NCBI RefSeq assembly: GCF_964204645.1
Contig: NW_027437471.1
Coordinates: 1-64,000 of the forward strand
Length of the DNA stretch: 64,000 nt
Source of the DNA: Tubulanus polymorphus
Lineage: Eukaryota; Animalia; Nemertea
Direction of reading: 5' to 3'
Shown: piece after piece, positions 12,491-63,608 of the stretch
Layout: every line of letters begins with the position of its first letter
Position numbering within the stretch: position 1 is the stretch's first letter
Notes under the pieces: model-generated
Told to the model about the DNA's origin: nothing
The model's database searches: none
Seen by the model: the letters and a program-made list of their open reading frames with translations, nothing else
Position numbers and translations under genes: made by a program

Positions 12491-12930
<440 letters not shown>

Positions 12931-12954
12931 ATATCACAGACGAATGGAGGCAAG

Positions 12955-26400: not shown

Positions 26401-27087
26401 GCCATTTTGATATTGCGTCATAGTTGTACCTCAGATTGGGATTCCCGCCGCTAGACTGGTCACCGCCACCTGCATTCGCAAGTAGAAATGGCAACCAGTC
26501 GATTGCAGGTCTCGGCTTCTTTTCGATTAGATTAGGTTTTGTATTCTACGCAATATTCAAAGAATTTATTCTAATGAAAACCACGCTCTTTACCAATCTA
26601 ATCATTCGTTTCGAGGTTTCCGTAATTACTACTTTAGTTCACAGAAATTCCGCTATCGTTATTCATAGGGGCAGCACTGAACGGTTATAATTTGATGCAG
26701 TCTTGCTATTTTACTGCGGCATGTGAGGAATACAGATTATTCTTAAGTCAAATTTCATTCATCACTCAACACTAGCTTGTTAGAAATTAATAACTGTACC
26801 AACATTAGAGCTTTATATAAGGAGAGTAAATGGTATGATAGAATCTCCCTAATTCCGATCATTGGGACCAACAAAATACATCCGTTTTACGGCAAATCCG
26901 GATTAAAAGTCATTTTCGTGTATATTAATGATTAAATTGACTGTAAATATTATCCGGATTAGACCAAAATTCGGATTAAGCCGATGCGGATTAAACGATT
27001 TAGTTTGACTGTATTAGCCAATAGAATCAGTCATCGCCCATCGAACTGGCCCCAGGGCACTAAAATTACCAAGAAACAAACACTGAC

Positions 27088-39585: not shown

Positions 39586-39773
39586 TTACATACACGTTAC
39601 GGTCACCTACCACAGCACAAGAAGAATATGGTAATAGCCGGTGGTGTAACTGCGTCTGTTATCGTAGCGCCAGTTGTCGCTAGTTTAGCCGTTGGTATCG
39701 GTGTACCGATATTATTGGCGTATGTTTACGGCGTGGTACCGATATCGCTGTGTCGCAGCGGTGGTTGCGGCGT
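39586..39773 (+). pseudogene. RNF19: Second RNF19-like exon copy, truncated mid-exon by telomeric repeats
   Basis: Near-identical to 33625-33812, then switches to TTAGGG. Confidence 0.88.
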
Positions 39774-39821
39774 TAGGGTTAGGGGTTAGGGTTAGGGTTA
39801 GGGGTTAGGGTTAGGGTTAGG
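39773..39821 (+). repeat. Telomeric tract: 7 TTAGGG/TTAGGGG units plus TTAGG
   Basis: Read directly. Confidence 0.97.
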
Positions 39822-40399
39822 TTTAGAGATAGAGGTTAGGGGACCAAACCGAAGGTTTGGAGACCCCACTAGTGCACGGGCAGCGGGTTATCCCTGTAAA
39901 AAAGTAGTGAGAGTTAATTGTTGTAGTGAGGCGGTCTACGGGACGTTCATGCCTCGGGGCGTGTTCGTGTCGAGTCGTCGTATCCAGTCTTGTTCGGCTG
40001 CTTCGCGGATCGGTCTCGTGGAGCCTGGTAGGTGTTGGAGACCGTACACCCGAAAGTGTTCGCGGGTGTGGTCGACTTGGTTGAAGTGGTCCGAGACTGG
40101 AGTCGAATTCTTCGTTCTGATGCGTGAGACGTGATGAGTGACGCGTTCTCGTAGAGACATTCCGGTTTGGCCGACGTACAGCATGTTGCACTTGGTGCAT
40201 TCGATGCAGTATACAATTTCACGGGTCGCGCAATTAATTGTGCTGCGGATCGCGTGCATTTTGTTGTGGCTGCGGCAAACGGTTGTTTCTCGGACGAGTG
40301 GACACGTACGACATCTCGGTGTTCTGCATTTCTCGGTGCCTCGACGTCGGGTTGACGGAGTTCTTTGAGTAGACCTGGAAATAGAAGAATTGGAAACAA
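39815..40399 (-). mobile_element. 5'-truncated PLE copy (3' UTR + GIY-YIG coding part only)
   Basis: Same sequence as 40413-40997 (offset 598). Confidence 0.95.
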
Positions 40400-40419
40400 G
40401 GGTTAGGGTTAGGGTTAGG
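40400..40419 (+). repeat. Telomeric tract GGG(TTAGGG)2TTAGG between truncated and full copy
   Basis: Read directly. Confidence 0.95.
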
Positions 40420-40533
40420 TTTAGAGATAGAGGTTAGGGGACCAAACCGAAGGTTTGGAGACCCCACTAGTGCACGGGCAGCGGGTTATCCCTGTAAAAA
40501 AGTAGTGAGAGTTAATTGTTGTAGTGAGGCGGT

Positions 40534-42993
40534 CTACGGGACGTTCATGCCTCGGGGCGTGTTCGTGTCGAGTCGTCGTATCCAGTCTTGTTCGGCTGCT
40601 TCGCGGATCGGTCTCGTGGAGCCTGGTAGGTGTTGGAGACCGTACACCCGAAAGTGTTCGCGGGTGTGGTCGACTTGGTTGAAGTGGTCCGAGACTGGAG
40701 TCGAATTCTTCGTTCTGATGCGTGAGACGTGATGAGTGACGCGTTCTCGTAGAGACATTCCGGTTTGGCCGACGTACAGCATGTTGCACTTGGTGCATTC
40801 GATGCAGTATACAATTTCACGGGTCGCGCAATTAATTGTGCTGCGGATCGCGTGCATTTTGTTGTGGCTGCGGCAAACGGTTGTTTCTCGGACGAGTGGA
40901 CACGTACGACATCTCGGTGTTCTGCATTTCTCGGTGCCTCGACGTCGGGTTGACGGAGTTCTTTGAGTAGACCTGGAAATAGAAGAATTGGAAACAACGG
41001 AAGTATTTCTGTTACGATGCGGTGAAGAGGGGACTCGGGGAGGGGGTGGCTCCGTGGGTTTGAGCTGCGACGAAGTTAGGAGATCTTTGAGACTCTTGTG
41101 CTTGGTGTAGGCGGTGACCGTGGTTACCTCGTCAGACCGGCCGGTGGCCGTAGCCAGTTCCGTAAATCTGGTTCGGATGTTACGGGCTAGGGTTCGGTTG
41201 GCTTCGGAGTGAGGTAAGATAAGCGGTAAACGCTTTTTCGGCGGTTCGTCGGCCCGTTGTTGTTCTCGTAGATCTCGTTCGGCGTGGTGCCGTAGAGCTT
41301 GGCTTTTGATGTGTCGCAGTTCGCGGTCTTTGTAGCCACGACCTCTGAGTACTTTAAGGACGGTTCCGGACGCTGCGTGTAAGTCCGAATCGTTATTGCA
41401 GATGCGCCGGAACCGGAGAATTTGACTTTTAACTATACCGGAAAATGTGTGTTTAGGGTGAAACGAGGATCGATGTAGTAATTGATGCGAATCGGTTGGT
41501 TTGAAGTAGACTTTGGTGTCTACTGTGCCACTTGTCTCGAATCGCGGGCCTTTGAAAGTGGTTACGTCCAGGAAGTTGACGCTGGTGTCGCTGATTTCGA
41601 ACTTGAGTTTGATGGATCGGCTCACTGTTTGTAGGACGTCGATGAATTGCATCAACGTTTCGCGGCCGTGTTCCCAAACTATGTAGATGTCGTCGATGAA
41701 CCGAGCGTATAGCGATGGTTGGAGTTCGCTTCTGGACAGACCTTCTTTTTCCCATTCGGCTACAAAGATATTGGCATAAGAAGGAGCAAAACGCTTACCC
41801 ATTGCGGTACCTTTTACCTGTAAATATGTGTTTTCGTTAAAGTTAAAGTCATTTTTCTTCAGGCTGATTTCGAGTAGTTTCAGTAGCTCGGCATCCGGGC
41901 GTCCCGGGTTCGGGTTATCTCGGAGAGCTTGTCGGATGCTGGCGATACCCTCTTCGTGGGGGATGTTGGTGTAGAGCGAATCGATGTCCATGGTGACGAG
42001 TAACGCATCGGCGCTAAATTGTTTACCGGCCAAAATATCTAGAAAGTGGTTGGTATCTTTGACGTACGACGGGTGACCGCGGGCGATCGGCTGCAAATAG
42101 TAGTCGATCCATTCCGAAATTTCGTAGGTTTCGGAGCCGCAGTCGGAGACGATCGGTCTCCCCGGCGGTACGCGATCGGGTACCGTCCACTTCTCGCGTT
42201 CTTTATGGATTTTGGGAAGCAGATAGAACTGCCTCTGTTTCGGATTATCGGGCGGTAATAGATATTCGGCGGTTTTTAGCGGGATGATTTTTCGTCGAGC
42301 CATATTTTCGATGATTTCGCGAATTTCTTCCCCGGTCTGTTCGAAAATCGGTTGCTGCAGCGGCTGATAATACTCGAGATCGGCTAGTTGGCGCATGGCT
42401 TCGTGGACGTAGTCGTCGCGGTCCATGATAACCGTAGCGGAACCCTTATCGGCGGCTTTGATGACAATATTAGTGTTGTCACGCAGCTGCTGGAGGGCTT
42501 CGCGTTCCTGTTTAGTGAGGTTATCATTTACGCGACGCGTATCCCTGGTTTGTTGAGCCAATTCGTGCGCGTCGTTGCAGAACCCGGCGATTACTGGTTC
42601 TATTTCATCCGGAGCCCAACTGCTGGGCAGACGGAAACGCGGAGCCTCGCGGTCCGGTTTGTCTCGGAAGTGATGGTCGAGTTTCACTAGCCGGTTGAAT
42701 CGGCACACTCCCTTGGTGCGCTCGGTCGCGGCGGCATCAGAACCGATTTTTGGAGTCGGGCAATAAGTGAGGCCCTTTCGGAGTAGCTGATGTTGCGCCG
42801 GACTTAGGCGGAGTGAACGTGTGAGGTTGACCACCGGGCTCCCGAGAGCGGTGACCGGATCGCGTCGCGCTTGGTTTGGTGCCGGTTCTTCGTGTTCGTC
42901 GGACCTGGAAATGGAAGAAATCAGAGAAGCATTGGTTAATTCCGGTTGATTTAACTCACCAATAGTGGACCCGTTGGTCTCACTAATACTTAG
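40534..42993 (-). CDS. PLE reverse transcriptase + GIY-YIG endonuclease (frame open upstream to the ORF1 end; likely expressed by -1 frameshift)
   Basis: ADKGS, FYLLPKIHK, PGRPIVS, MDIDSLYTNIP, GTAMG, RFIDD, FLDV, YFKPT, CRTPRCRTC, IVYCIECTKC..YVGQT..RERVTHH..E..GMN. Confidence 0.96.
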   Translation of the reverse strand, partial: LSISETNGSTIGELNQPELTNASLISSISRSDEHEEPAPNQARRDPVTALGSPVVNLTRSLRLSPAQHQLLRKGLTYCPTPKIGSDAAATERTKGVCRFNRLVKLDHHFRDKPDREAPRFRLPSSWAPDEIEPVIAGFCNDAHELAQQTRDTRRVNDNLTKQEREALQQLRDNTNIVIKAADKGSATVIMDRDDYVHEAMRQLADLEYYQPLQQPIFEQTGEEIREIIENMARRKIIPLKTAEYLLPPDNPKQRQFYLLPKIHKEREKWTVPDRVPPGRPIVSDCGSETYEISEWIDYYLQPIARGHPSYVKDTNHFLDILAGKQFSADALLVTMDIDSLYTNIPHEEGIASIRQALRDNPNPGRPDAELLKLLEISLKKNDFNFNENTYLQVKGTAMGKRFAPSYANIFVAEWEKEGLSRSELQPSLYARFIDDIYIVWEHGRETLMQFIDVLQTVSRSIKLKFEISDTSVNFLDVTTFKGPRFETSGTVDTKVYFKPTDSHQLLHRSSFHPKHTFSGIVKSQILRFRRICNNDSDLHAASGTVLKVLRGRGYKDRELRHIKSQALRHHAERDLREQQRADEPPKKRLPLILPHSEANRTLARNIRTRFTELATATGRSDEVTTVTAYTKHKSLKDLLTSSQLKPTEPPPPRVPSSPHRNRNTSVVSNSSISRSTQRTPSTRRRGTEKCRTPRCRTCPLVRETTVCRSHNKMHAIRSTINCATREIVYCIECTKCNMLYVGQTGMSLRERVTHHVSRIRTKNSTPVSDHFNQVDHTREHFRVYGLQHLPGSTRPIREAAEQDWIRRLDTNTPRGMNVP

Positions 42994-42999
42994 TTTAAA
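42963..42999 (-). promoter_or_regulatory. Predicted -1 ribosomal frameshift signal: U_UUA_AAC, 7-nt spacer, hairpin (heptamers also at 49332-49338, 55686-55692, 62040-62046)
   Basis: Heptamer in the correct phase immediately before the ORF1 UAA; -1 frame open into RT; stem TAGTG-A-GACC-AACG-GGTC-CACTA. Confidence 0.85.
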
Positions 43000-44546
43000 C
43001 CACTGAGCCAGTGGTCCAGCAGGGTGTTAGCTGTACCACGGTTCCAGTGGATCCCGTCTCCAACAACTCTGAAGCGTCGATCATCGATGGGTGGTATCGC
43101 GGTGACGTCGTCGTTATTCTCGAGGAATTCGTTGAACTTCCGGGCGAACTGCTGGTGTTCGCGGGTCGTGTTGAGTTGAACGAAGTGGACGAACGAGTGC
43201 TGATACTTCTTGACTGCGGCGTTGATCAGGCGCTGTGTGGTCTTCTTGGCGGTCGCTTCGAAGTTGTTGTCGCGGTTGTTGATTCCGACGCTGATGATCA
43301 CCGTATCCGGGCGATCTCGGCGCTCCGGTACAGCATCGATCAGGTCGGCGAGATGAGCTATCTTGCAGCCGGGGAAGCTCTCGATCTGGACGTCATCCGG
43401 ACGGCGGCTTGATGTGATGTTACTCAGATTTGAGTCACCAATCACCAGAATGGGTCGCCGGGTTGGTGGCAGACTCCAATCCTGTTTCTTCCGACCCGTT
43501 TTCGGATGACGGCGAACTTCCTGGGGCGCCATCGGTCTCGGTGTTGGCGTCGGACTTCGCGCTGGCAGTAGGCGCCCTGGTGACCTGTAATGAGACGGAG
43601 AGCTGGAAAGAGAAGAAGAGAGAGACGGCGTCGGACTGCTGGTTGGTGCGGTCGGCGTTCTCTGCGGCGGCGGCGTCGGGTTTCGAGGCGGCGGCGTCGG
43701 ACTTCTCGGTGGTGTCGGACTTCTTGGTGGCGGCGGCGGCGTCGGCATCGGACTTCTCGGTGGTGGCGCCATTCTGGTTGGTGGCGTCCTGGTGACATCC
43801 GCGTAGCTTCTCGGTGACCTGGAATCAGAAAAAGAAGGAGACGCTGTGGGCGCGGCGGGCGCGGCTGCGGTTGGTGCAGGCGTCCTCGGCGTCGCGGGCT
43901 TTCGAATCTTCCGGCTCGGTCTCGGCGGCGGACGAATCTTCGGCTCCGTGGGTGCCTCCTGGTGGTGTGACCTGAAATGAGAAGGGGAAGAAGGTGGGTT
44001 AGATAGGACATTTCTGAGTTTGTCAGACAGAGCCTGACCGCGGAATTTCGACCGCAAATCCAGCGCGATGTTGAAAAGCCGGATCGTTCCGGGGCTCAGA
44101 CGGGAGCCGAAATTCCTCCGGGCCCATGTCAGGGCGACATCCTGTGCTGATAGACAGTCCGGCAGAGGATCACCCATTAGCTCAACAAATGTGGCAGCAT
44201 AATGGATGGTCAGCTCTTTCGAAACTGTCTCCATCCAGACGTCCGCGGCAGCGTGCAGCTGCACCGTTACTGCTTCGGTGCAAGCCGCCGGCCGCAGGAA
44301 CATCTTCAGATGGTCCTTCTTCCTCCGAATCGCTTTCGGACCAGAGCTCAACTGGGCAAGGTGGTGCGCCACTTGAAGAGCTCTATAATACGTTTTCGGC
44401 GACATCCCGGGTTGCTGGTGTCGCTCAGGGCGTCCTCCGCCCTTGCTGGTCTTCTCAGCTGGTGGTCGTTTCTTCTTTCGAGTAGATCGCTCCATTGACA
44501 GATATTTCGGCGAGGTTGCCTTCGTCAGTGTCAGTGCAGGAATCAT
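42990..44546 (-). CDS. PLE ORF1: basic/helical N-terminus, Pro/Ser/Thr-rich linker, C-terminal SGNH/GDSL esterase (likely true start Met18 at 44495)
   Basis: SGNH blocks ILVIGDSNL, SFPG, ISVGINN, DGIH. Confidence 0.9.
   Translation of the reverse strand: MIPALTLTKATSPKYLSMERSTRKKKRPPAEKTSKGGGRPERHQQPGMSPKTYYRALQVAHHLAQLSSGPKAIRRKKDHLKMFLRPAACTEAVTVQLHAAADVWMETVSKELTIHYAATFVELMGDPLPDCLSAQDVALTWARRNFGSRLSPGTIRLFNIALDLRSKFRGQALSDKLRNVLSNPPSSPSHFRSHHQEAPTEPKIRPPPRPSRKIRKPATPRTPAPTAAAPAAPTASPSFSDSRSPRSYADVTRTPPTRMAPPPRSPMPTPPPPPRSPTPPRSPTPPPRNPTPPPQRTPTAPTSSPTPSLSSSLSSSPSHYRSPGRLLPARSPTPTPRPMAPQEVRRHPKTGRKKQDWSLPPTRRPILVIGDSNLSNITSSRRPDDVQIESFPGCKIAHLADLIDAVPERRDRPDTVIISVGINNRDNNFEATAKKTTQRLINAAVKKYQHSFVHFVQLNTTREHQQFARKFNEFLENNDDVTAIPPIDDRRFRVVGDGIHWNRGTANTLLDHWLSGLN
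44496..44533 (-). ncRNA. Type I minimal hammerhead ribozyme, unit 1
   Basis: UGACA-CUGACGA-A-GGC-AACCUC-GCC-GAAA-UA-UC/UGUCA: complete core, stems I and II, minimal palindromic stem III. Confidence 0.85.
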
Positions 44547-44569
44547 GCTGAACTAGGATTAGACACGGG

Positions 44570-44577
44570 TTTTTATA
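44570..44577 (-). promoter_or_regulatory. Candidate TATA box (TATAAAAA) upstream of the hammerhead/ORF1
   Basis: Motif and position only; present in all units. Confidence 0.4.
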
Positions 44578-46872
44578 CACGCAGCGCGCAACAAGTGAAC
44601 AGTATTTGAGTTAGAAGTTAAGTGACCATATGAGACCTTGTGATCTAGACTAATTGTACTTCTGTGATCAAGCTAATAGACAAACTAGGGGTCTGACTAA
44701 TTATGCCTTTGATCCAGAGTGACTAGAAAACAGCACTAATTATGGCCCTTGATCTAGCTGTTGAATAGTTTGCTTTGATGTATAGTTCTAAAGATCTAAA
44801 GAACGGCGTGTCTAATATAGAATTGAAAAGTTTATTTCGATATAACCTAATAAATACTCAAAGTGTTTTCTATAAAGAGAAATCTAGAATATGTATTATT
44901 AATATACGTGAACCGGAATGTTCGAAATATGTCCGAGTTCAGTTTCAAAATTGCTTAATTCCTAATTAGTTTAGACGCGTTAATTAGCGGTGCGCGGCCG
45001 AGGCGTATTCCGATATACGCGTGTTTACTAAATAGTCGTAAATGGTGAAATCCGGCTCTTAGTTAATCAAGTTTTCTCCGTATTCTAAAGCTTTAAAGAG
45101 CGGATTTTGAAATATCTACGCGGTATTCTACCGAAAATTGGATGAATTAGACAGCGCGGCGTCGGCGATTTAGTAGGAAGTTATAACCCGTAAGATCTAA
45201 ATTACTGAGTGAGCGCGGGTGGTTAATTAGCCCTAATTATGGGTGACGAGTTTTGATAAAAATGTCTTACTGATACGTCTGTTTTAATTCTAAGTTCTTA
45301 AATATAATTCTATTAGATAAACTACGCTTATTTAGAGTTATTAGGATCGAGTAAAGCTATGTGAACTTGAATATGTGACAAATATATTCAGACCGGAGCG
45401 CGGGTATTCAGTAAATCGGTTTAAGCTTGCGTAGTTTGAGTGGTTCAAAAACACTATGATCTCTTCTTTAATCCGAAGGTTGAAATATATACGTGATATA
45501 AAACTCTTTTTGAATCGGGAATATTGGGCTGTGTTCTTTGAAAAAAAACTGATGAGTTTGAAGGCGTCATAACTGCGATTTTGTATAGAATTGAGTCGGA
45601 TAATTAGTCAAGAGGCGCGGGTGGCCGATCGGTCACTAATTATGAGTGACTTGTAAACAGTGATTGATGTCCGTGGACTATTATTTATCCTATAAACTTC
45701 TTATACTTCTACAACCTATAGTGCGGTTTTTGAATATAGCTACTAATACTTTTGAGCGATCTCATTAGAATTGTTATCCGAAATAAACTGTCTGTTTTAG
45801 AGAAATTTGAAACTTGACACCCGGATCTATATAGAGTATGTTCCAAGAGTTGGCGCGTAGATACGATAATAGTTAATTAGGACGTAGCGGGTTAGGTCCC
45901 CGACCGAACGTTATAGATTAAACGGAGGTTAATTAGGGTGCCGCGGGTTCGAGTCCCGACCAGGCGCCGTTTAGTAATTGAATAGTTCTATTCTAAATGT
46001 TTTTTACCTATTCTGGATTCCTTTTAATTCTGAATCTTTGACGGATACAATAGTACTTTTCAGATGTTTCTACGATATAATCTTAGTGCCGACGCATATT
46101 TTCAAAATAAATAAGAGCGGTGGACTGGTTACCGGTATCTAACGCGGGGCACCGGCAACCCGTCAGTACTAGCGGTTAATTTCGGAGCGGCGGGTACGGT
46201 TCCCGAGTATTCTCCGGAGCTTAATTCGGGTGCCGCGGGTTCGAGTCCCGATCAGGCGCGCCGTTTTAGTAATTGAGTATATTCTTACCTATTCTAGATT
46301 CCCTTTCTTTCTAAATTTATAATAGATTAATTAATACTTTTCGGGTGTTTTTATGATATAATCTCAGTGCTGACGCATATTTTCGAAATAGATAATAGCG
46401 GTGGACTGGTTACCGGTTTCTATCGTCCCGGGACAGGCAACCAGTCTGTACTAGCGGTTAGGGTTCGGTTCCCGATATCGCGCTTTTGTTTATTTTTCTA
46501 ACTGTTTCTGATATTTGGTCTGTCTTCTTACTTACTGAATTTCGATTGAGTTTTCAAAGTAAAGCAGAGAGAACTAATTAAAAGATAAAAGGTTGATGAT
46601 TCCTGTGGAGCTTGTGATCTTGGAGTTTGTTTTGTACTCTGTCTCTGAGCGGGTTTCTGCTTCAGGCGACGGAGGATGATTCTGCAAATAGATTGATGAT
46701 TAATAATTAATCAGTTAAGATAATTTACGAGGGAAACCTGGCACGGGCTAAGGTTAGGTTTAGAGATAGAGGTTAGGGGACCAAACCGAAGGTTTGGAGA
46801 CCCCACTAGTGCACGGGCAGCGGGTTATCCCTGTAAAAAAGTAGTGAGAGTTAATTGTTGTAGTGAGGCGGT

Positions 46873-49332: not shown

Positions 49333-50900
49333 TTTAAACCACTGAGCCAGTGGTCCAGCAGGGTGTTAGCTGTACCACGGTTCCAGTGGATCCCGTCTCC
49401 AACAACTCTGAAGCGTCGATCATCGATGGGTGGTATCGCGGTGACGTCGTCGTGAATCTCGAGGAATTCGTTGAACTTCCGGGCGAACTGCTGGTGTTCG
49501 CGGGTCGTGTTGAGTTGAACGAAGTGGACGAACGAGTGCTGATACTTCTTGACTGCGGCGTTGATCAGGCGCTGTGTGGTCTTCTTGGCGGTCGCTTCGA
49601 AGTTGTTGTCGCGGTTGTTGATTCCGACGCTGATGATCACCGTATCCGGGCGATCTCGGCGCTCCGGTACAGCATCGATCAGGTCGGCGAGATGAGCTAT
49701 CTTGCAGCCGGGGAAGCTCTCGATCTGGACGTCATCCGGACGGCGGCTTGATGTGATGTTACTCAGATTTGAGTCACCAATCACCAGAATGGGTCGCCGG
49801 GTTGGTGGCAGACTCCAATCCTGTTTCTTCCGACCCGTATTCGGATGACGGCGAACTTCCTGGGGCGCCATCGGTCTCGGTGTAGGCGTCGGACTTCGCG
49901 CTGGCAGTAGGCGCCCTGGTGACCTGTAATGAGACGGAGAGCTGGAAAGAGAAGAAGAGAGAGACGGCGTCGGACTGCTGGTTGGTGCGGTCGGCGTTCT
50001 CTGCGGCGGCGGCGGCGGCGGCGGCGTCGGGTTTCGAGGCGGCGGCGTCGGACTTCTCGGTGGCGTCGGACTTCTTGGTGGCGGCGGCGGCGGCGTCGGC
50101 ATCGGACTTCTCGGTGGTGGCGCCATTCTGGTTGGTGGCGTCCTGGTGACATCCGCGTAGCTTCTCGGTGACCTGGAATCAGAAAAAGAAGGAGGCGCTG
50201 TGGGCGCGGCGGGCGCGACTGCGGTTGGTGCAGGCGTCCTCGGCGTCGCGGGCTTTCGAATCTTCCGGCTCGGTCTCGGCGGCGGACGAATCTTCGGCTC
50301 CGTGGGTGCCTCCTGGTGGTGTGACCTGAAATGAGAAGGGGAAGAAGGTGGGTTAGATAGGACATTTCTGAGTTTGTCAGACAGAGCCTGACCGCGGAAT
50401 TTCGACCGCAAATCCAGCGCGATGTTGAAAAGCCGGATCGTTCCGGGGCTCAGACGGGAGCCGAAATTCCTCCGGGCCCATGTCAGGGCGACATCCTGTG
50501 CTGATAGACAGTCCGGCAGAGGATCACCCATTAGCTCAACAAATGTGGCAGCGTAATGGATGGTCAGCTCTTTCGAAACTGTCTCCATCCAGACGTCCGC
50601 GGCAGCGTGCAGCTGCACCGTTACTGCTTCGGTGCAAGCCGCCGGCCGCAGGAACATCTTCAGATGGTCCTTCTTCCTCCGAATCGCTTTCGGACCAGAG
50701 CTCAACTGGGCAAGGTGGTGCGCCACTTGAAGAGCTCTATAATAGGTTTTCGGCGACATCCCGGGTTGCTGGTGTCGCTCAGGGCGTCCTCCGCCCTTGC
50801 TGGTCTTCTCAGCTGGTGGTCGTTTCTTCTTTCGAGTAGATCGCTCCATTGACAGATATTTCGGCGAGGTTGCCTTCGTCAGTGTCAGTGCAGGAATCAT
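49329..50900 (-). CDS. PLE ORF1 SGNH esterase, unit 2
   Basis: Same motifs; 5 extra Pro codons. Confidence 0.9.
   Translation of the reverse strand: MIPALTLTKATSPKYLSMERSTRKKKRPPAEKTSKGGGRPERHQQPGMSPKTYYRALQVAHHLAQLSSGPKAIRRKKDHLKMFLRPAACTEAVTVQLHAAADVWMETVSKELTIHYAATFVELMGDPLPDCLSAQDVALTWARRNFGSRLSPGTIRLFNIALDLRSKFRGQALSDKLRNVLSNPPSSPSHFRSHHQEAPTEPKIRPPPRPSRKIRKPATPRTPAPTAVAPAAPTAPPSFSDSRSPRSYADVTRTPPTRMAPPPRSPMPTPPPPPPRSPTPPRSPTPPPRNPTPPPPPPPQRTPTAPTSSPTPSLSSSLSSSPSHYRSPGRLLPARSPTPTPRPMAPQEVRRHPNTGRKKQDWSLPPTRRPILVIGDSNLSNITSSRRPDDVQIESFPGCKIAHLADLIDAVPERRDRPDTVIISVGINNRDNNFEATAKKTTQRLINAAVKKYQHSFVHFVQLNTTREHQQFARKFNEFLEIHDDVTAIPPIDDRRFRVVGDGIHWNRGTANTLLDHWLSGLN
50850..50887 (-). ncRNA. 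Hammerhead ribozyme, unit 2
   Basis: Identical to 44496-44533. Confidence 0.85.
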
Positions 50901-53226: not shown

Positions 53227-55686
53227 CTACGGGACGTTCATGCCTCGGGGCGTGTTCGTGTCGAGTCGTCGTATCCAGTCTTGTTCGGCTGCTTCGCGGA
53301 TCGGTCTCGTGGAGCCTGGTAGGTGTTGGAGACCGTACACCCGAAAGTGTTCGCGGGTGTGGTCGACTTGGTTGAAGTGGTCCGAGACTGGAGTCGAATT
53401 CTTCGTTCTGATGCGTGAGACGTGATGAGTGACGCGTTCTCGTAGAGACATTCCGGTTTGGCCGACGTACAGCATGTTGCACTTGGTGCATTCGATGCAG
53501 TATACAATTTCACGGGTCGCGCAATTAATTGTGCTGCGGATCGCGTGCATTTTGTTGTGGCTGCGGCAAACGGTTGTTTCTCGGACGAGTGGACACGTAC
53601 GACATCTCGGTGTTCTGCATTTCTCGGTGCCTCGACGTCGGGTTGACGGAGTTCTTTGAGTAGACCTGGAAATAGAAGAATTGGAAACAACGGAAGTATT
53701 TCTGTTACGATGCGGTGAAGAGGGGACTCGGGGAGGGGGTGGCTCCGTGGGTTTGAGCTGCGACGAAGTTAGGAGATCTTTGAGACTCTTGTGCTTGGTG
53801 TAGGCGGTGACCGTGGTTACCTCGTCAGACCGGCCGGTGGCCGTAGCCAGTTCCGTAAATCTGGTTCGGATGTTACGGGCTAGGGTTCGGTTGGCTTCGG
53901 AGTGAGGTAAGATAAGCGGTAAACGCTTTTTCGGCGGTTCGTCGGCCCGTTGTTGTTCTCGTAGATCTCGTTCGGCGTGGTGCCGTAGAGCTTGGCTTTT
54001 GATGTGTCGCAGTTCGCGGTCTTTGTAGCCACGACCTCTGAGTACTTTAAGGACGGTTCCGGACGCTGCGTGTAAGTCCGAATCGTTATTGCAGATGCGC
54101 CGGAACCGGAGAATTTGACTTTTAACTATACCGGAAAATGTGTGTTTAGGGTGAAACGAGGATCGATGTAGTAATTGATGCGAATCGGTTGGTTTGAAGT
54201 AGACTTTGGTGTCTACTGTGCCACTTGTCTCGAATCGCGGGCCTTTGAAAGTGGTTACGTCCAGGAAGTTGACGCTGGTGTCGCTGATTTCGAACTTGAG
54301 TTTGATGGATCGGCTCACTGTTTGTAGGACGTCGATGAATTGCATCAACGTTTCGCGGCCGTGTTCCCAAACTATGTAGATGTCGTCGATGAACCGAGCG
54401 TATAGCGATGGTTGGAGTTCGCTTCTGGACAGACCTTCTTTTTCCCATTCGGCTACAAAGATATTGGCATAAGAAGGAGCAAAACGCTTACCCATTGCGG
54501 TACCTTTTACCTGTAAATATGTGTTTTCGTTAAAGTTAAAGTCATTTTTCTTCAGGCTGATTTCGAGTAGTTTCAGCAGCTCGGCATCCGGGCGTCCCGG
54601 GTTCGGGTTATCTCGGAGAGCTTGTCGGATGCTGGCGATACCCTCTTCGTGGGGGATGTTGGTGTAGAGCGAATCGATGTCCATGGTGACGAGTAACGCA
54701 TCGGCGCTAAATTGTTTACCGGCCAAAATATCTAGAAAGTGGTTGGTATCTTTGACGTACGACGGGTGACCGCGGGCGATCGGCTGCAAATAGTAGTCGA
54801 TCCATTCCGAAATTTCGTAGGTTTCGGAGCCGCAGTCGGAGACGATCGGTCTCCCCGGCGGTACGCGATCGGGTATCGTCCACTTCTCGCGTTCTTTATG
54901 GATTTTGGGAAGCAGATAGAACTGCCTCTGTTTCGGATTATCGGGCGGTAATAGATATTCGGCGGTTTTTAGCGGGATGATTTTTCGTCGAGCCATATTT
55001 TCGATGATTTCGCGAATTTCTTCCCCGGTCTGTTCGAAGATCGGTTGCTGCAGCGGCTGATAATACTCGAGATCGGCTAGTTGGCGCATGGCTTCGTGGA
55101 CGTAGTCGTCGCGGTCCATGATAACCGTAGCGGAACCCTTATCGGCGGCTTTGATGACAATATTAGTGTTGTCACGCAGCTGCTGGAGGGCTTCGCGTTC
55201 CTGTTTAGTGAGGTTATCATTTACGCGACGCGTATCCCTGGTTTGTTGAGCCAATTCGTGCGCGTCGTTGCAGAACCCGGCGATTACTGGTTCTATTTCA
55301 TCCGGAGCCCAACTGCTGGGCAGACGGAAACGCGGAGCCTCGCGGTCCGGTTTGTCTCGGAAGTGATGGTCGAGTTTCACTAGCCGGTTGAATCGGCACA
55401 CTCCCTTGGTGCGCTCGGTCGCGGCGGCATCAGAACCGATTTTTGGAGTCGGGCAATAAGTGAGGCCCTTTCGGAGTAGCTGATGTTGCGCCGGACTTAG
55501 GCGGAGTGAACGTGTGAGGTTGACCACCGGGCTCCCGAGAGCGGTGACCGGATCGCGCCGCGCTTGGTTTGGTGCCGGTTCTTCGTGTTCGTCGGACCTG
55601 GAAATGGAAGAAATCAGAGAAGCATTGGTTAATTCCGGTTGATTTAACTCACCAATAGTGGACCCGTTGGTCTCACTAATACTTAG
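53227..55686 (-). CDS. PLE RT + GIY-YIG, unit 3
   Basis: Same motifs; intact. Confidence 0.96.
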   Translation of the reverse strand, partial: LSISETNGSTIGELNQPELTNASLISSISRSDEHEEPAPNQARRDPVTALGSPVVNLTRSLRLSPAQHQLLRKGLTYCPTPKIGSDAAATERTKGVCRFNRLVKLDHHFRDKPDREAPRFRLPSSWAPDEIEPVIAGFCNDAHELAQQTRDTRRVNDNLTKQEREALQQLRDNTNIVIKAADKGSATVIMDRDDYVHEAMRQLADLEYYQPLQQPIFEQTGEEIREIIENMARRKIIPLKTAEYLLPPDNPKQRQFYLLPKIHKEREKWTIPDRVPPGRPIVSDCGSETYEISEWIDYYLQPIARGHPSYVKDTNHFLDILAGKQFSADALLVTMDIDSLYTNIPHEEGIASIRQALRDNPNPGRPDAELLKLLEISLKKNDFNFNENTYLQVKGTAMGKRFAPSYANIFVAEWEKEGLSRSELQPSLYARFIDDIYIVWEHGRETLMQFIDVLQTVSRSIKLKFEISDTSVNFLDVTTFKGPRFETSGTVDTKVYFKPTDSHQLLHRSSFHPKHTFSGIVKSQILRFRRICNNDSDLHAASGTVLKVLRGRGYKDRELRHIKSQALRHHAERDLREQQRADEPPKKRLPLILPHSEANRTLARNIRTRFTELATATGRSDEVTTVTAYTKHKSLKDLLTSSQLKPTEPPPPRVPSSPHRNRNTSVVSNSSISRSTQRTPSTRRRGTEKCRTPRCRTCPLVRETTVCRSHNKMHAIRSTINCATREIVYCIECTKCNMLYVGQTGMSLRERVTHHVSRIRTKNSTPVSDHFNQVDHTREHFRVYGLQHLPGSTRPIREAAEQDWIRRLDTNTPRGMNVP

Positions 55687-57254
55687 TTTAAACCACTGAG
55701 CCAGTGGTCCAGCAGGGTGTTAGCTGTACCACGGTTCCAGTGGATCCCGTCTCCAACAACTCTGAAGCGTCGATCATCGATGGGTGGTATCGCGGTGACG
55801 TCGTCGTGAATCTCGAGGAATTCGTTGAACTTCCGGGCGAACTGCTGGTGTTCGCGGGTCGTGTTGAGTTGAACGAAGTGGACGAACGAGTGCTGATACT
55901 TCTTGACTGCGGCGTTGATCAGGCGCTGTGTGGTCTTCTTGGCGGTCGCTTCGAAGTTGTTGTCGCGGTTGTTGATTCCGACGCTGATGATCACCGTATC
56001 CGGGCGATCTCGGCGCTCCGGTACAGCATCGATCAGGTCGGCGAGATGAGCTATCTTGCAGCCGGGGAAGCTCTCGATCTGGACGTCATCCGGACGGCGG
56101 CTTGATGTGATGTTACTCAGATTTGAGTCACCAATCACCAGAATGGGTCGCCGGGTTGGTGGCAGACTCCAATCCTGTTTCTTCCGACCCGTATTCGGAT
56201 GACGGCGAACTTCCTGGGGCGCCATCGGTCTCGGTGTAGGCGTCGGACTTCGCGCTGGCAGTAGGCGCCCTGGTGACCTGTAATGAGACGGAGAGCTGGA
56301 AAGAGAAGAAGAGAGAGACGGCGTCGGACTGCTGGTTGGTGCGGTCGGCGTTCTCTGCGGCGGCGGCGGCGGCGGCGGCGTCGGGTTTCGAGGCGGCGGC
56401 GTCGGACTTCTCGGTGGCGTCGGACTTCTTGGTGGCGGCGGCGGCGGCGTCGGCATCGGACTTCTCGGTGGTGGCGCCATTCTGGTTGGTGGCGTCCTGG
56501 TGACATCCGCGTAGCTTCTCGGTGACCTGGAATCAGAAAAAGAAGGAGGCGCTGTGGGCGCGGCGGGCGCGACTGCGGTTGGTGCAGGCGTCCTCGGCGT
56601 CGCGGGCTTTCGAATCTTCCGGCTCGGTCTCGGCGGCGGACGAATCTTCGGCTCCGTGGGTGCCTCCTGGTGGTGTGACCTGAAATGAGAAGGGGAAGAA
56701 GGTGGGTTAGATAGGACATTTCTGAGTTTGTCAGACAGAGCCTGACCGCGGAATTTCGACCGCAAATCCAGCGCGATGTTGAAAAGCCGGATCGTTCCGG
56801 GGCTCAGACGGGAGCCGAAATTCCTCCGGGCCCATGTCAGGGCGACATCCTGTGCTGATAGACAGTCCGGCAGAGGATCACCCATTAGCTCAACAAATGT
56901 GGCAGCGTAATGGATGGTCAGCTCTTTCGAAACTGTCTCCATCCAGACGTCCGCGGCAGCGTGCAGCTGCACCGTTACTGCTTCGGTGCAAGCCGCCGGC
57001 CGCAGGAACATCTTCAGATGGTCCTTCTTCCTCCGAATCGCTTTCGGACCAGAGCTCAACTGGGCAAGGTGGTGCGCCACTTGAAGAGCTCTATAATAGG
57101 TTTTCGGCGACATCCCGGGTTGCTGGTGTCGCTCAGGGCGTCCTCCGCCCTTGCTGGTCTTCTCAGCTGGTGGTCGTTTCTTCTTTCGAGTAGATCGCTC
57201 CATTGACAGATATTTCGGCGAGGTTGCCTTCGTCAGTGTCAGTGCAGGAATCAT
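55683..57254 (-). CDS. PLE ORF1 SGNH esterase, unit 3
   Basis: Same motifs. Confidence 0.9.
   Translation of the reverse strand: MIPALTLTKATSPKYLSMERSTRKKKRPPAEKTSKGGGRPERHQQPGMSPKTYYRALQVAHHLAQLSSGPKAIRRKKDHLKMFLRPAACTEAVTVQLHAAADVWMETVSKELTIHYAATFVELMGDPLPDCLSAQDVALTWARRNFGSRLSPGTIRLFNIALDLRSKFRGQALSDKLRNVLSNPPSSPSHFRSHHQEAPTEPKIRPPPRPSRKIRKPATPRTPAPTAVAPAAPTAPPSFSDSRSPRSYADVTRTPPTRMAPPPRSPMPTPPPPPPRSPTPPRSPTPPPRNPTPPPPPPPQRTPTAPTSSPTPSLSSSLSSSPSHYRSPGRLLPARSPTPTPRPMAPQEVRRHPNTGRKKQDWSLPPTRRPILVIGDSNLSNITSSRRPDDVQIESFPGCKIAHLADLIDAVPERRDRPDTVIISVGINNRDNNFEATAKKTTQRLINAAVKKYQHSFVHFVQLNTTREHQQFARKFNEFLEIHDDVTAIPPIDDRRFRVVGDGIHWNRGTANTLLDHWLSGLN
57204..57241 (-). ncRNA. Hammerhead ribozyme, unit 3
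   Basis: Identical motif. Confidence 0.85.
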
Positions 57255-59580
57255 GCTGAACTAGGATTAGACACGGGTTTTTATACACGCAGCGCGCAAC
57301 AAGTGAACAGTATTCGAGTTAGAAGTTAAGTGACCATATGAGACCTTGTGATCTAGACTAATTGTACTTCTGTGATCAAGCTAATAGACAAACTAGGGGT
57401 CTGACTAATTATGCCTTTGATCCAGAGTGACTAGAAAACAGCACTAATTATGGCCCTTGATCTAGCTGTTGAATAGTTTGCTTTGATGTATAGTTCTAAA
57501 GATCTAAAGAACGGCGTGTCTAATATAGAATTGAAAAGTTTATTTCGATATAACCTAATAAATACTCAAAGTGTTTTCTATAAAGAGAAATCTAGAATAT
57601 GTATTATTAATATACGTGAACCGGAATGTTCGAAATATGTCCGAGTTCAGTTTCAAAATTGCTTAATTCCTAATTAGTTTAGACGCGTTAATTAGCGGTG
57701 CGCGGCCGAGGCGTATTCCGATATACGCGTGTTTACTAAATAGTCGTAAATGGTGAAATCCGGTTCTTAGTTAATCAAGTTTTCTCCGTATTCTAAAGCT
57801 TTTAAGAGCGGATTTTGAAATATCTACGCGGTATTCTACCGAAAATTGGATGAATTAGACAGCGCGGCGTCGGCGATTTAGTAGGAAGTTATAACCCGTA
57901 AGATCTAAATTACTGAGTGAGCGCGGGTGGTTAATTAGCCCTAATTATGGGTGACGAGTTTTGATAGAAATGTCTTACTAATACGTCTGTTTTAATTCTA
58001 AGTTCTTAAATATAATTCTATTAGATAAACTACGCTTATTTAGAGTTATTAGGATCGAGTAAAGCTATGTGAACTTGAACATGTGACAAATATATTCAGA
58101 CCGGAGCGCGGGTATTCAGTAAATCGGTTTAAGCTTGCGTAGTTTGAGTGGTTCAAAAACACTATGATCTCTTCTTTAATCCGAAGGTTGAAATATATAC
58201 GGGATATAAAACTCTTTTTGAATCGGGAATATTGGGCTGTGTTCTTTGAGAAAAACCGATGAGTTTGAAGGCGTCGTAACTGCGATTTTGTATAGAATTG
58301 AGTCGGATAATTAGTCAAGAGGCGCAGGTGGCCGATCGGTCACTAATTATGAGTGACTTGTAAACAGTGATTGATGTCCGTGGACTATTATTTATCCTAT
58401 AAACTTCTTATACTTCTACAACCTATAGTGCGGTTTTTGAATATAGCTATTAATACTTTTGAGCGATCTCATTAGAATTGTTATCCGAAAATAAACTGTC
58501 TGTTTTAGAGAAATTTGAAACTTGACACCCGGATCTATATAGAGTATGTTCCAAGAGTTGGCGCGTAGATACGATAATAGTTAATTAGGACGTAGCGGGT
58601 TAGGTCCCCGACCGAACGTTATAGATTAAACGGAGGTTAATTAGGGTGCCGCGGGTTCGAGTCCCGACCAGGCGCCGTTTAGTAATTGAATAGTTCTATT
58701 CTAAATGTTTTTTACCTATTCTGGATTCCTTTTAATTCTGAATCTTTGACGGATACAATAGTACTTTTCAGATGTTTCTACGATATAATCTTAGTGCCGA
58801 CGCATATTTTCAAAATAAATAAGAGCGGTGGACTGGTTACCGGTATCTAACGCGGGGCACCGGCAACCCGTCAGTACTAGCGGTTAATTTCGGAGCGGCG
58901 GGTACGGTTCCCGAGTATTCTCCGGAGCTTAATTCGGGTGCCGCGGGTTCGAGTCCCGATCAGGCGCGCCGTTTTAGTAATTGAGTATATTCTTACCTAT
59001 TCTAGATTCCCTTTCTTTCTAAATTTATAATAGATTAATTAATACTTTTCGGGTGTTTCTATGATATAATCTCAGTGCTGACGCATATTTTCGAAATAGA
59101 TAATAGCGGTGGACTGGTTACCGGTTTCTATCGTCCTGGGACAGGCAACCAGTCTGTACTAGCGGTTAGGGTTCGGTTCCCGATATCGCGCTTTTGTTTA
59201 TTTTTCTAACTGTTTCTGATATTTGGTCTGTCTTCTTACTTACTGAATTTCGATTGAGTTTTCAAAGTAAAGCAGAGAGAACTAATTAAAAGATAAAAGG
59301 TTGATGATTCCTGTGGAGCTTGTGATCTTGGAGTTTGTTTTGTACTCTGTCTCTGAGCGGGTTTCTGCTTCAGGCGACGGAGGATGATTCTGCAAATAGA
59401 TTGATGATTAATAATTAATCAGTTAAGATAATTTACGAGGGAAACCTGGCACGGGCTAAGGTTAGGTTTAGAGATAGAGGTTAGGGGACCAAACCGAAGG
59501 TTTGGAGACCCCACTAGTGCACGGGCAGCGGGTTATCCCTGTAAAAAAGTAGTGAGAGTTAATTGTTGTAGTGAGGCGGT

Positions 59581-62040: not shown

Positions 62041-63608
62041 TTTAAACCACTGAGCCAGTGGTCCAGCAGGGTGTTAGCTGTACCACGGTTCCAGTGGATC
62101 CCGTCTCCAACAACTCTGAAGCGTCGATCATCGATGGGTGGTATCGCGGTGACGTCGTCGTGAATCTCGAGGAATTCGTTGAACTTCCGGGCGAACTGCT
62201 GGTGTTCGCGGGTCGTGTTGAGTTGAACGAAGTGGACGAACGAGTGCTGATACTTCTTGACTGCGGCGTTGATCAGGCGCTGTGTGGTCTTCTTGGCGGT
62301 CGCTTCGAAGTTGTTGTCGCGGTTGTTGATTCCGACGCTGATGATCACCGTATCCGGGCGATCTCGGCGCTCCGGTACAGCATCGATCAGGTCGGCGAGA
62401 TGAGCTATCTTGCAGCCGGGGAAGCTCTCGATCTGGACGTCATCCGGACGGCGGCTTGATGTGATGTTACTCAGATTTGAGTCACCAATCACCAGAATGG
62501 GTCGCCGGGTTGGTGGCAGACTCCAATCCTGTTTCTTCCGACCCGTATTCGGATGACGGCGAACTTCCTGGGGCGCCATCGGTCTCGGTGTAGGCGTCGG
62601 ACTTCGCGCTGGCAGTAGGCGCCCTGGTGACCTGTAATGAGACGGAGAGCTGGAAAGAGAAGAAGAGAGAGACGGCGTCGGACTGCTGGTTGGTGCGGTC
62701 GGCGTTCTCTGCGGCGGCGGCGGCGGCGGCGGCGTCGGGTTTCGAGGCGGCGGCGTCGGACTTCTCGGTGGCGTCGGACTTCTTGGTGGCGGCGGCGGCG
62801 GCGTCGGCATCGGACTTCTCGGTGGTGGCGCCATTCTGGTTGGTGGCGTCCTGGTGACATCCGCGTAGCTTCTCGGTGACCTGGAATCAGAAAAAGAAGG
62901 AGGCGCTGTGGGCGCGGCGGGCGCGACTGCGGTTGGTGCAGGCGTCCTCGGCGTCGCGGGCTTTCGAATCTTCCGGCTCGGTCTCGGCGGCGGACGAATC
63001 TTCGGCTCCGTGGGTGCCTCCTGGTGGTGTGACCTGAAATGAGAAGGGGAAGAAGGTGGGTTAGATAGGACATTTCTGAGTTTGTCAGACAGAGCCTGAC
63101 CGCGGAATTTCGACCGCAAATCCAGCGCGATGTTGAAAAGCCGGATCGTTCCGGGGCTCAGACGGGAGCCGAAATTCCTCCGGGCCCATGTCAGGGCGAC
63201 ATCCTGTGCTGATAGACAGTCCGGCAGAGGATCACCCATTAGCTCAACAAATGTGGCAGCGTAATGGATGGTCAGCTCTTTCGAAACTGTCTCCATCCAG
63301 ACGTCCGCGGCAGCGTGCAGCTGCACCGTTACTGCTTCGGTGCAAGCCGCCGGCCGCAGGAACATCTTCAGATGGTCCTTCTTCCTCCGAATCGCTTTCG
63401 GACCAGAGCTCAACTGGGCAAGGTGGTGCGCCACTTGAAGAGCTCTATAATAGGTTTTCGGCGACATCCCGGGTTGCTGGTGTCGCTCAGGGCGTCCTCC
63501 GCCCTTGCTGGTCTTCTCAGCTGGTGGTCGTTTCTTCTTTCGAGTAGATCGCTCCATTGACAGATATTTCGGCGAGGTTGCCTTCGTCAGTGTCAGTGCA
63601 GGAATCAT
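62037..63608 (-). CDS. PLE ORF1 SGNH esterase, unit 4
   Basis: Same motifs. Confidence 0.9.
   Translation of the reverse strand: MIPALTLTKATSPKYLSMERSTRKKKRPPAEKTSKGGGRPERHQQPGMSPKTYYRALQVAHHLAQLSSGPKAIRRKKDHLKMFLRPAACTEAVTVQLHAAADVWMETVSKELTIHYAATFVELMGDPLPDCLSAQDVALTWARRNFGSRLSPGTIRLFNIALDLRSKFRGQALSDKLRNVLSNPPSSPSHFRSHHQEAPTEPKIRPPPRPSRKIRKPATPRTPAPTAVAPAAPTAPPSFSDSRSPRSYADVTRTPPTRMAPPPRSPMPTPPPPPPRSPTPPRSPTPPPRNPTPPPPPPPQRTPTAPTSSPTPSLSSSLSSSPSHYRSPGRLLPARSPTPTPRPMAPQEVRRHPNTGRKKQDWSLPPTRRPILVIGDSNLSNITSSRRPDDVQIESFPGCKIAHLADLIDAVPERRDRPDTVIISVGINNRDNNFEATAKKTTQRLINAAVKKYQHSFVHFVQLNTTREHQQFARKFNEFLEIHDDVTAIPPIDDRRFRVVGDGIHWNRGTANTLLDHWLSGLN
63558..63595 (-). ncRNA. Hammerhead ribozyme, unit 4
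   Basis: Identical motif. Confidence 0.85.

Follow-up and report, generated by a model that had tools for sequence, protein, structure and literature searches.

Hammerhead ribozymes of metazoan Penelope-like elements (PLEs) are minimal type I motifs with a palindromic helix III, which implies dimers (Cervera & de la Pena 2014, PMC4209133), and their purpose has been given in the literature as precursor processing, circularisation, a passenger role or none (PMC4209133, PMC8557442, PMC11167929). In PAc, the Poseidon element of Anolis carolinensis, cleavage depends on protein, and insertion in vitro does not require cleavage (Frangieh et al., 2024, PMC11167929). Athena/Terminon PLEs carry reverse-complement telomeric repeats at their 3' ends and form head-to-tail arrays beside telomeric repeats; GDSL esterase ORFs occur in Terminons, and their hammerhead is at the 3' end, directly upstream of the telomeric tract (Arkhipova et al., 2017, PMC6431247, PMC8557442). 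Retrozymes, thought to be derived from PLE repeats, are likewise tandem units each with a type I hammerhead and a palindromic helix III (PMC7229834, bioRxiv 10.64898/2026.07.22.740005). Self-cleaving motifs upstream of a start codon, giving an uncapped RNA, are found 5' of an ORF as hammerheads in the untranslated regions of chrysoviruses and fusariviruses (PMC13725137) and as HDV-like ribozymes in R2 and other non-LTR elements (Ruminski 2011, cited in PMC13725137).

The window analysed here, a 64-kb stretch of DNA from the ribbon worm Tubulanus polymorphus, contains a hammerhead that resides in an endonuclease-bearing two-ORF PLE, and this element forms subtelomeric tandem arrays with head-to-tail units of 6354 bp. 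All features described below are on the minus strand. ORF1 (42990..44495; 501 aa counted from Met18) is an open frame that reaches back to an ATG at 44546, is proline-rich in its middle and carries a GDSL/SGNH-like domain at the C terminus (a weak, sub-threshold Pfam match). ORF2 (40534..42834), the open frame of which reaches upstream across the end of ORF1, was recognised from Pfam matches and motifs as a reverse transcriptase (RT) with a CX4CX2C linker and, at the C terminus, a GIY-YIG endonuclease; RVT_1 scored 32.2 bits and GIY-YIG 21.3 bits, just below the 22.6 cut-off, and the GIY, YIG, R, E, N and Cys motifs are visible. It has 3246 relatives at E below 1e-30, the best match being a Tubulanus polymorphus protein with 97% identity. 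Between the 3' end of the previous unit and the TATA box lies a 2.2-kb non-coding region (44578..46751) with an internal repeat of ~260 bp, in which sense-strand ATG is strongly depleted (5 vs about 33 expected). Units end in a 3' terminal telomere-like tract, at 40413-40426 in unit 1 and at 46752..46765 in unit 2, where it has the sequence CTCTAAACCTAACC and joins the next unit. The inner end of the array carries an extra 5'-truncated copy that retains the element's final 592 bp (39808..40399), and the array abuts (CCCTAA)n telomeric repeats (39772..39813; TTAGGG on the plus strand). A sister element, 51% identical, is present in the same genome (G000:C4:49619-51841 and 55132-57354). Four public runs, none recorded as RNA, contain the stretch, in contigs of unspecified type with a depth like that of multi-copy DNA; the one possible RNA run gave a 0.00 share of the sampled words of the stretch.

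The element thus resembles the Terminons in its tract, its array and its GDSL-like domain, but it retains a GIY-YIG endonuclease in ORF2, whereas the Athena/Terminon elements are endonuclease-less. In addition, its tract follows a hairpin without a hammerhead, the hammerhead being 4.1 kb upstream of the tract and 2.2 kb downstream of it in the next unit, so that neither mark of the Terminon-type 3' module (a hammerhead beside telomeric repeats; no endonuclease) is present. Nor is it a retrozyme: those are small, non-coding, non-autonomous units from which circular RNAs are made (PMC7229834, bioRxiv 10.64898/2026.07.22.740005), whereas the unit here is a 6.35-kb autonomous element that encodes ORF1 and RT/GIY-YIG.

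The hammerhead of unit 1 (44496..44533), found by direct reading, a copy scan and a covariance model, is a complete minimal type I motif: UGACA-CUGACGA-A-GGC(AACCUC)GCC-GAAA-UA-UC|UGUCA-AUG. Helix I (UGACA/UGUCA, 5 bp) pairs 44533-44529 with 44500-44496; the core CUGACGA occupies 44528-44522; helix II is GGC/GCC (3 bp, 6-nt loop), and is followed by GAAA and by helix III, an AUAU palindrome. The cut is predicted after C 44501, that is, between 44501 and 44500 (cleavage dinucleotide U-H = UC), and 5 nt beyond it an AUG (44495-44493) encodes Met18 of the open frame 42990-44546. Identical copies lie at 50850..50887, 57204..57241 and 63558..63595 (copy scan and covariance model), giving four in the window, one per unit and spaced by exactly 6354 bp. 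The original prediction had named the same core, stems, cut position and Met18, as well as the number of one per unit, and each agrees with what is read in the sequence. The A at 44521, unpaired between A9 and G10.1, is a further detail that was absent from it.

The assignment to the PLE type was also sound. The published features of metazoan PLE hammerheads (PMC4209133) recur in this copy: the topology is type I, helix I is short (4-5 bp), one nucleotide stays unpaired between A9 and position 10.1, the G10.1-C11.1 pair is conserved, helix III is very small and palindromic, and the motif resides in repeated non-coding DNA of a PLE with RT and GIY-YIG. This copy differs from the published hammerheads in its helix II of 3 bp, compared with 6-8 bp in Schistosoma and Drosophila virilis (PMC4209133), in the separate ORF1 of its host element, and in being present once in each full tandem unit, where those occupy two short flanking repeats. 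Judged by its sequence, therefore, this is a genuine hammerhead, of the minimal type I variant that PLEs carry, and the hammerhead and its element belong to an already known kind.

In a monomer, helix III would be reduced to one A-U pair with a loop of 2 nt, so the hammerhead would need a partner. The AUAU/AUAU dimer helix has a calculated duplex energy of +1.6 kcal/mol by itself, which is unfavourable and the weakest of the seven elements compared (the window element and the six relatives introduced below); with a helix II of 3 bp as well, the copy in the window may be nearly inactive. An RNAcofold calculation on two copies gave strand-swapped helices I and II and no hammerhead dimer, and was discarded.

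By chance, a window should contain 0.07 matches to a loose hammerhead pattern, and four were reached in 0 of 100 shuffles; the full structural descriptor had 0 matches in Markov-simulated sequence (300 x 64 kb for each of two compositions, both strands searched). A search with hammerhead models had been named as a check in the original prediction. In Rfam (release 15) no family reached its gathering score in the window, and within 44300-44750 no hammerhead family appeared even at E up to 10, which is unsurprising because helix III of the motif is a single pair; Rfam is thus uninformative for so minimal a variant. A covariance model built from six relatives, with the window left out, did match the four hammerhead sites, at 31 bits and an E of about 1e-6 (a rough calibration), and no other site in the window fell below E 0.8. 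Applied to the whole genome, the covariance model scored 150 of about 28,000 candidates and so yields no census. The metagenome pattern scan returned mostly unrelated or other PLE-type hammerheads and was uninformative about position; one human-gut metagenome locus from that scan (L050) gave no match to the full descriptor.

The six relatives are distant elements (L036, L038, L159, L161, L162 and L163) that share the hammerhead architecture and have the layout of ORF1 and RT/GIY-YIG, or a degenerate version of it. Their helix III palindromes are AUAUAU, ACCGGU, AGCGCU, AGUACU, AUAUAU and AGAUCU, so that a palindromic helix III of 4-6 nt is present in 7/7 elements, as are the unpaired A after A9 and the G10.1-C11.1 pair. 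In helices I and II of the relatives, 88.9% of alignment cells are paired, compared with 68.8% in shuffles (0/500 reach the observed value) and 18-41% in slid-alignment controls, and seven of the nine helix pairs change on both sides. Among the seven elements, which are otherwise unalignable, thirteen alignment columns do not vary; they comprise the catalytic boxes and G10.1-C11.1. Within the genome, the 38-nt motif is identical in all 34 copies fetched; element positions 2146-2257 are invariant among them and ORF1 varies. In three further genomic copies, matched over 24 nt, the sole difference is at the free core position N7. The combination of an invariant core, covarying helices and a change confined to N7 suits a motif selected for catalysis, not one selected as a generic hairpin, and the comparison indicates that the hammerhead is selectively maintained.

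A TATAAAA box (44571..44577) precedes the hammerhead core by 49 nt and the cut by 77 nt, and in 7/7 elements the TATA box is found 41-49 nt ahead of the core and 73-80 nt ahead of the cut; that the spacing of TATA box and ribozyme is fixed in seven distant elements is a modest new finding of the comparison. Five short genomic units begin at the equivalent of 44547-44544 in the window, 31 nt past the TATA box, and are joined directly to (CCCTAA)n telomeric repeats with an intact hammerhead at their 5' ends; their junctions are of two types, one seen in four identical units in tandem on a single contig and the other in one unit on a different contig. From these DNA junctions and the TATA spacing we infer a transcription start ~31 nt past the TATA box (44544..44547), which coincides with the in-frame ATG at 44546-44544. 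TATA box, inferred start, hammerhead and two in-frame AUGs thus all fall inside 85 nt, and, since the short units begin where they do, the hammerhead would start at about +14 of a TATA-driven transcript. As units beginning at 44547-44544 carry the intact motif, the copied RNAs kept the hammerhead uncut.

The 5' ends of other copies were compared with the position of the cut. The 5' ends of the truncated units fall at 1277, 1399 and 1770 in element coordinates and those of the short units at about 2206, and tandem junctions are at the telomere-like tract, 2.2 kb upstream of the hammerhead. With exact-match patterns, no genomic copy was found to start or end at the predicted cut, the test of 3' ends being blind to flanks that begin with T, and no copy starts within 30 nt of the cut following telomeric repeats. 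In two chromosome-internal copies, L031 and L032, homology ends at element positions 2210 and 2206. Both ends were considered as starts of reverse transcription; for L031 this was rejected, as the element resumes about 4.25 kb further on, indicating a secondary insertion; the continuation has a hammerhead at C2:15118671-15118694 and ORF2 at 15115459-15116997.

The account that we consider probable as a whole is that of a maintained PLE hammerhead at the boundary of promoter and ORF1, the cleavage of which is inefficient and assisted and does not define the copied template. The hammerhead sits where the non-coding, promoter-bearing region meets ORF1, and would span about +14 to about +51 of the TATA-driven transcript. 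Because the monomer cannot form helix III and the dimer helix consists of four A-U pairs, the predicted cleavage is probably inefficient and assisted. By analogy with PAc, assistance may come from a second copy and/or from the element's own protein; this need for a dimer or a protein, and any cleavage in vivo, are presumed. PAc has a comparable layout, with its hammerhead at the junction of non-coding repeat and first ORF and overlapping the start region, the ORF beginning in stem II and the cut falling 26 nt past the start codon (PMC11167929); in the window element, in-frame AUGs are found 46 nt before and 5 nt after the predicted cut. PAc differs in having a single ORF and in that the protein requirement and the dispensability of its cleavage were shown experimentally (PMC11167929), cleavage in the window element being predicted from sequence. 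A cut would free a 5'-OH RNA starting UGUCA-AUG, the other product being either the 2.2-kb RNA from upstream or a short fragment that bears the cap. Cleavage does not appear to define the ends of copied templates, because the reverse-transcribed RNAs carried the hammerhead uncut, and is more likely to trim or sort some transcripts, for example by freeing the ORF1 of downstream units in read-through RNA.

A different role, in translation, is possible although we regard it as unlikely: self-cleavage would remove the cap or the upstream RNA, leaving an uncapped mRNA with the ORF1 AUG 5 nt from its 5'-OH and translated independently of a cap, as has been reported for RNA-virus hammerheads in untranslated regions and for the HDV-like ribozymes of non-LTR elements. 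The AUG 5 nt past the predicted cut invites this reading, since a type I hammerhead of a fusarivirus cuts 7 nt before the ORF start and cap-independent translation from a chrysovirus 5'-UTR required hammerhead self-cleavage (PMC13725137). Those viral and the non-LTR cases have in vivo end mapping and in some instances reporter evidence, whereas the likeness in the window element is one of geometry, which is not conserved in relatives. There the distance from cut to ORF1 is 88, 196, 822, 883 or 1156 nt, so that it ranges from 5 to 1156 nt across elements; the 5-nt leader of the original prediction holds for the window element and is lineage-specific. A leader of 5 nt is also too short for ordinary translation initiation. 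In three relatives the leader after the hammerhead is depleted in AUG (0, 2 and 6 ATG vs 10, 12 and 17 expected), which speaks for such a role; the possibility that these long leaders are introns was rejected, as the depletion and the lack of clear acceptors favour scanned leaders. In the window element, however, the AUG-depleted 2.2 kb is upstream of the hammerhead and ahead of the second in-frame AUG (44546), which lies across the hammerhead from Met18, at the inferred transcription start and 46 nt before the cut, and this region looks like a scanned leader of uncut RNA. Met18, previously taken as the likely start, is indeed an in-frame AUG, but its use as the start is uncertain. We give a similarly low probability to a broader version, in which two-ORF endonuclease-bearing PLEs (with a GDSL or NADAR ORF1) would share, clade-wide, a promoter-coupled 'decapping' ribozyme. 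With a TATA spacing of 73-80 nt the ribozyme would form in the first ~50 nt of a Pol II transcript and its cleavage would remove the cap; the 5'-OH RNAs, whose leaders would be 5 nt long in the ribbon worm and AU-rich and free of AUG in the relatives, would then be translated cap-independently or be sorted between translation and reverse transcription.

Somewhat less probable is the model in which the hammerheads of adjacent units pair and cut read-through RNA into 6.35-kb monomers with 5'-OH and cyclic-phosphate ends, which circularise or serve as templates for retrotransposition. It has been proposed for PLEs generally (PMC4209133), and it accords with a head-to-tail array with one hammerhead per unit and with a palindromic helix III that requires a partner. 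The original prediction favoured such pairing and cutting to unit length, but it has left no footprint in the genome: unit junctions are at the telomere-like tract and not at the cut, truncated and short units start elsewhere, no copy begins or ends at the cut or starts close to it after telomeric repeats, the short units keep an uncut hammerhead at their 5' ends, and the dimer helix is unfavourable. Moreover, hammerhead mutants of PAc insert normally, and RNA-seq ends are absent at its cut (PMC11167929). Circularisation or unconventional initiation, which the original prediction took to be implied, may occur.

It is just as doubtful that cleavage is irrelevant and that the element's proteins dock on or recognise the fold, or that the hammerhead is a passenger. 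Metazoan PLE hammerheads are weakly active in vitro (PMC4209133), insertion of PAc does not depend on its hammerhead, close to which protein binding has been mapped (PMC11167929), Naiad PLEs thrive without hammerheads (PMC8557442), and helix III of the window copy is weak. Against this, the 13 catalytic and G10.1-C11.1 columns are invariant in seven elements while the helices covary, and the free N7 is the sole core position to change among other genomic copies. Finally, a chance resemblance multiplied by tandem repetition, to which the silence of Rfam might point along with the fact that the four window copies, being the same sequence repeated, count as one observation, is effectively refuted by the simulations, by the E value of the independent covariance model and by six relatives with covarying motifs at the equivalent position.

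The maintained, assisted hammerhead that we favour lies in a natural arrangement of unusual clarity; the family is young and has many copies, and its DNA copies begin at the inferred start with the ribozyme retained. This arrangement argues against cleavage setting the copied template in this PLE family, and it makes two ideas testable: that trimming is assisted by protein, and that translation depends on the ribozyme, as was recently reported in RNA viruses.

The repeat unit in the window is a Penelope-like element (PLE) on the minus strand, and positions 44533-44496 of that strand form a complete type I hammerhead ribozyme motif. Helix I (UGACA/UGUCA) encloses the core boxes CUGACGA and GAAA, helix II (GGC/GCC) closes a 6-nt loop (AACCUC), and helix III is a single pair, A15.1-U16.1, around UA (A-UA-U, the palindrome AUAU), after which comes the cleavage dinucleotide UC. 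The original prediction had described this core and these helices, a cut between 44501 and 44500 and an AUG next at 44495-44493, all of which can be read from the sequence; one unpaired A, separating A9 from G10.1, was absent from that description. The motif does occur once per unit, as had been claimed, with identical 38-nt copies at 50850-50887, 57204-57241 and 63558-63595 and a period of exactly 6354 bp across the four. Chance expectation for a loose hammerhead pattern is 0.07 per window; for each of two compositions 300 sequences of 64 kb were simulated, none of which matched the full structural descriptor. In the proposed search with hammerhead models, Rfam returned no match to the motif, even when E values up to 10 were tried locally, which we attribute to the near-absence of helix III. 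A covariance model built from six relatives, without the window, recovered the four window sites at full length (31 bits; E about 1e-6, a rough value) and nothing further in the window below E 0.8.

These relatives, six contigs of other organisms (L036, L038, L159, L161, L162 and L163), were reached through homologues of ORF1 and ORF2. Five have the ORF1-plus-RT/GIY-YIG layout, and in L161 the RT/GIY-YIG gene alone was called. Ahead of its first ORF, each of the six has a hammerhead built in the same way, with the core, the unpaired A, G-C as the first helix II pair and a palindromic helix III (AUAUAU, ACCGGU, AGCGCU, AGUACU, AUAUAU and AGAUCU); that of L159 has a variant core, CUUGAAGA. Helices I and II differ in sequence between relatives and are complementary within each. 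With the window excluded, 88.9% of cells were paired, compared with 68.8% in shuffles (0/500 reached 88.9%) and 18-41% when the partner was slid, and 7 of 9 pairs had changed on both sides. Within the host genome, the 38-nt motif was identical in 34/34 copies fetched; counting down the minus strand from window 46751 as element position 1, the hammerhead occupies 2219-2256 (cut after 2251), and positions 2146-2257 were invariant in these copies while ORF1 immediately 3′ was variable. Three further genomic copies (24 nt matched) differed at N7 only, the sole free core position. All four hallmarks that have been published for minimal hammerheads of PLEs (PMC4209133) are present here, and we therefore regard the motif, on this comparative evidence, as real and under selection; its assignment to the PLE-hammerhead family is secure. 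Two local details were also seen. The variant core CUUGAAGA replaces CUGANGA at both L159:8005-8046 and L160:578-620, with the helices otherwise intact and an AGCGCU palindrome, and a UGGAG(U/C)G motif lies just 3′ of the helix I 3′ strand at L161:2172-2180, L162:2839-2846, L163:2053-2060 and window 44495-44487, where it includes the ORF1 AUG.

ORF1 (42990-44495, minus strand, frame open back to 44546) has a proline-rich middle, and its C-terminal domain matches GDSL_2 at a sub-threshold score (E 0.012); GDSL and NADAR domains are present in its homologues. ORF2 (40534-42834, minus strand, ending at element position 6218) encodes RVT_1 and GIY-YIG domains; the latter scores 21.3 bits, slightly below the cut-off of 22.6, and the catalytic and cysteine motifs can be recognised. 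The ORF2 frame is open for about 64 codons 5′ of the first listed start, overlapping the end of ORF1 (window 42834-43030), which suggests frameshift or fusion expression. The nearest database protein to the element is from Tubulanus polymorphus itself (97% identity). The unit ends at about element position 6346, inside a telomere-like tract, CTCTAAACCTAACC; the telomere-complementary tract (CTAAACCTAACC) that terminates the PLE lies at window 40400-40426 and 46752-46765. At the inner end of the array, a 592-bp 5′-truncated extra copy abuts (CCCTAA)n at about 39772-39813. The 3′ tract and (CCCTAA)n resemble the telomere attachment of Athena elements, although here a GIY-YIG domain is present. 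Dozens of near-identical units form tandems, both on small contigs and close to chromosome ends. Units of 4150 bp elsewhere have about 2.5 telomeric repeats between them (G000:C65:19084-31578, C10:31614-31654), and a sister PLE family with an ORF2 51% identical lies in tandem within an array of this element (G000:C4:49619-51841, 55132-57354). Outside the PLE array the window holds tandem repeats of 25, 9/15 and 33 bp (906-1530, 12360-12900, 27000-27930) as well as a segmental duplication (about 13 kb, 99-100% identical; 6165-13205 versus 18963-25910).

All seven elements, distantly related two-ORF PLEs taken from assembly or metagenome contigs, have a TATA box at a fixed spacing from the hammerhead, 41-49 nt ahead of the core and 73-80 nt ahead of the cut: in the window (TATAAAA, 44577-44571, minus strand) and in the six relatives (L036:8444, L038:139, L159:7962; also L161, L162 and L163). 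A pattern search of the genome revealed five units that begin, immediately after telomeric repeats, at the equivalent of window 44547-44544; four of these junctions are identical (the 4150-bp tandem on host contig C65) and one is different (C10). As this junction lies 30-32 nt past the TATA box, we read it as the probable start of transcription, preserved in DNA through reverse transcription of the full-length RNA. The hammerhead would then span about +14 to about +51 of the transcript, and the upstream in-frame ATG at 44546 would form its very 5′ end. In two chromosome-internal copies, L031 (G000:C2:15120000-15129999, ~2958) and L032 (G000:C2:14790000-14796000, ~3215), homology breaks off no more than 5 nt from the proposed start; at L031, an element carrying a CCHC gag-like ORF has inserted secondarily (4.25 kb). 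Minimal PLE hammerheads are of a kind already known; new here are the conserved TATA-to-hammerhead spacing and DNA copies that start at the proposed start with the ribozyme uncut.

The AUG does lie 5 nt past the predicted cut, as originally stated, but the distance from cut to ORF1 in relatives is 88 (L036), 196 (L159), 822 (L163), 883 (L038) or 1156 nt (L162), and the 5-nt spacing is therefore particular to the window lineage. The long leaders are depleted of ATG (L038, 0 versus 10 expected; L163, 2 versus 12; L162, 6 versus 17). Similarly, the 2.2 kb upstream of the window TATA box (44578-46751, minus strand) contains 5 sense ATG versus about 33 expected, other triplets of the same composition occurring 20-48 times, and its uORFs have only 3-38 codons; it looks like the scanned 5′ leader of a long, uncut RNA. 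In-frame AUGs lie on both sides of the hammerhead, at 44546 (purine at -3) and 44495, so that the ORF1 start may differ with the RNA produced. Use of the upstream AUG would place the cut 46 nt inside the ORF, paralleling PAc, the Poseidon PLE of Anolis carolinensis, which is cut 26 nt past its start codon (PMC11167929). For an uncapped mRNA whose leader is very short, RNA viruses offer recent precedents: a fusarivirus hammerhead cuts 7 nt before a start codon, and translation from a chrysovirus 5′-UTR depends on catalysis (PMC13725137). For the element in the window, this reading is of low probability.

The original prediction also invoked dimers between adjacent units, unit-length RNA and circularisation, the standard published hypothesis for PLEs, which the genomic footprints do not support. 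Tandem junctions between units fall at the telomere-like tract, and shorter units start at element positions 1277, 1399, 1770 and about 2206, those at about 2206 with the hammerhead intact at their 5′ end. Exact-match patterns found no genomic copy with a differing base before UGUCAAUGG or after GAAAUAUC (the 3′ test would miss a flank starting with T) and no telomeric repeat within 30 nt upstream of GGAGCGAUC. Taken together, these results argue that the RNAs that were reverse transcribed were uncut. This agrees with PAc, whose insertion is normal when the hammerhead is mutated and for which RNA-seq shows no ends at the cut (PMC11167929).

Folding of the motif, alone or in context, returned helices I and II, with helix I extended by interrupted pairing that included the AUG. 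In a monomer, helix III is not feasible, since the loop that it would have to close has only 2 nt; the dimer helix III consists of four A-U pairs and, at +1.6 kcal/mol by itself, is the weakest among the seven elements. The PLE hammerheads in the literature show poor cleavage in vitro, and that of PAc needs its protein (PMC4209133, PMC11167929). Among public runs, none recorded as RNA contains this stretch; the four that do are contigs of unlabelled kind at DNA-like depth. We propose that the hammerhead is promoter-proximal, placed where the non-coding repeat meets ORF1, and that its cleavage, assisted by a dimer or protein, would trim or sort a fraction of transcripts, without defining the ends of the template that is copied.
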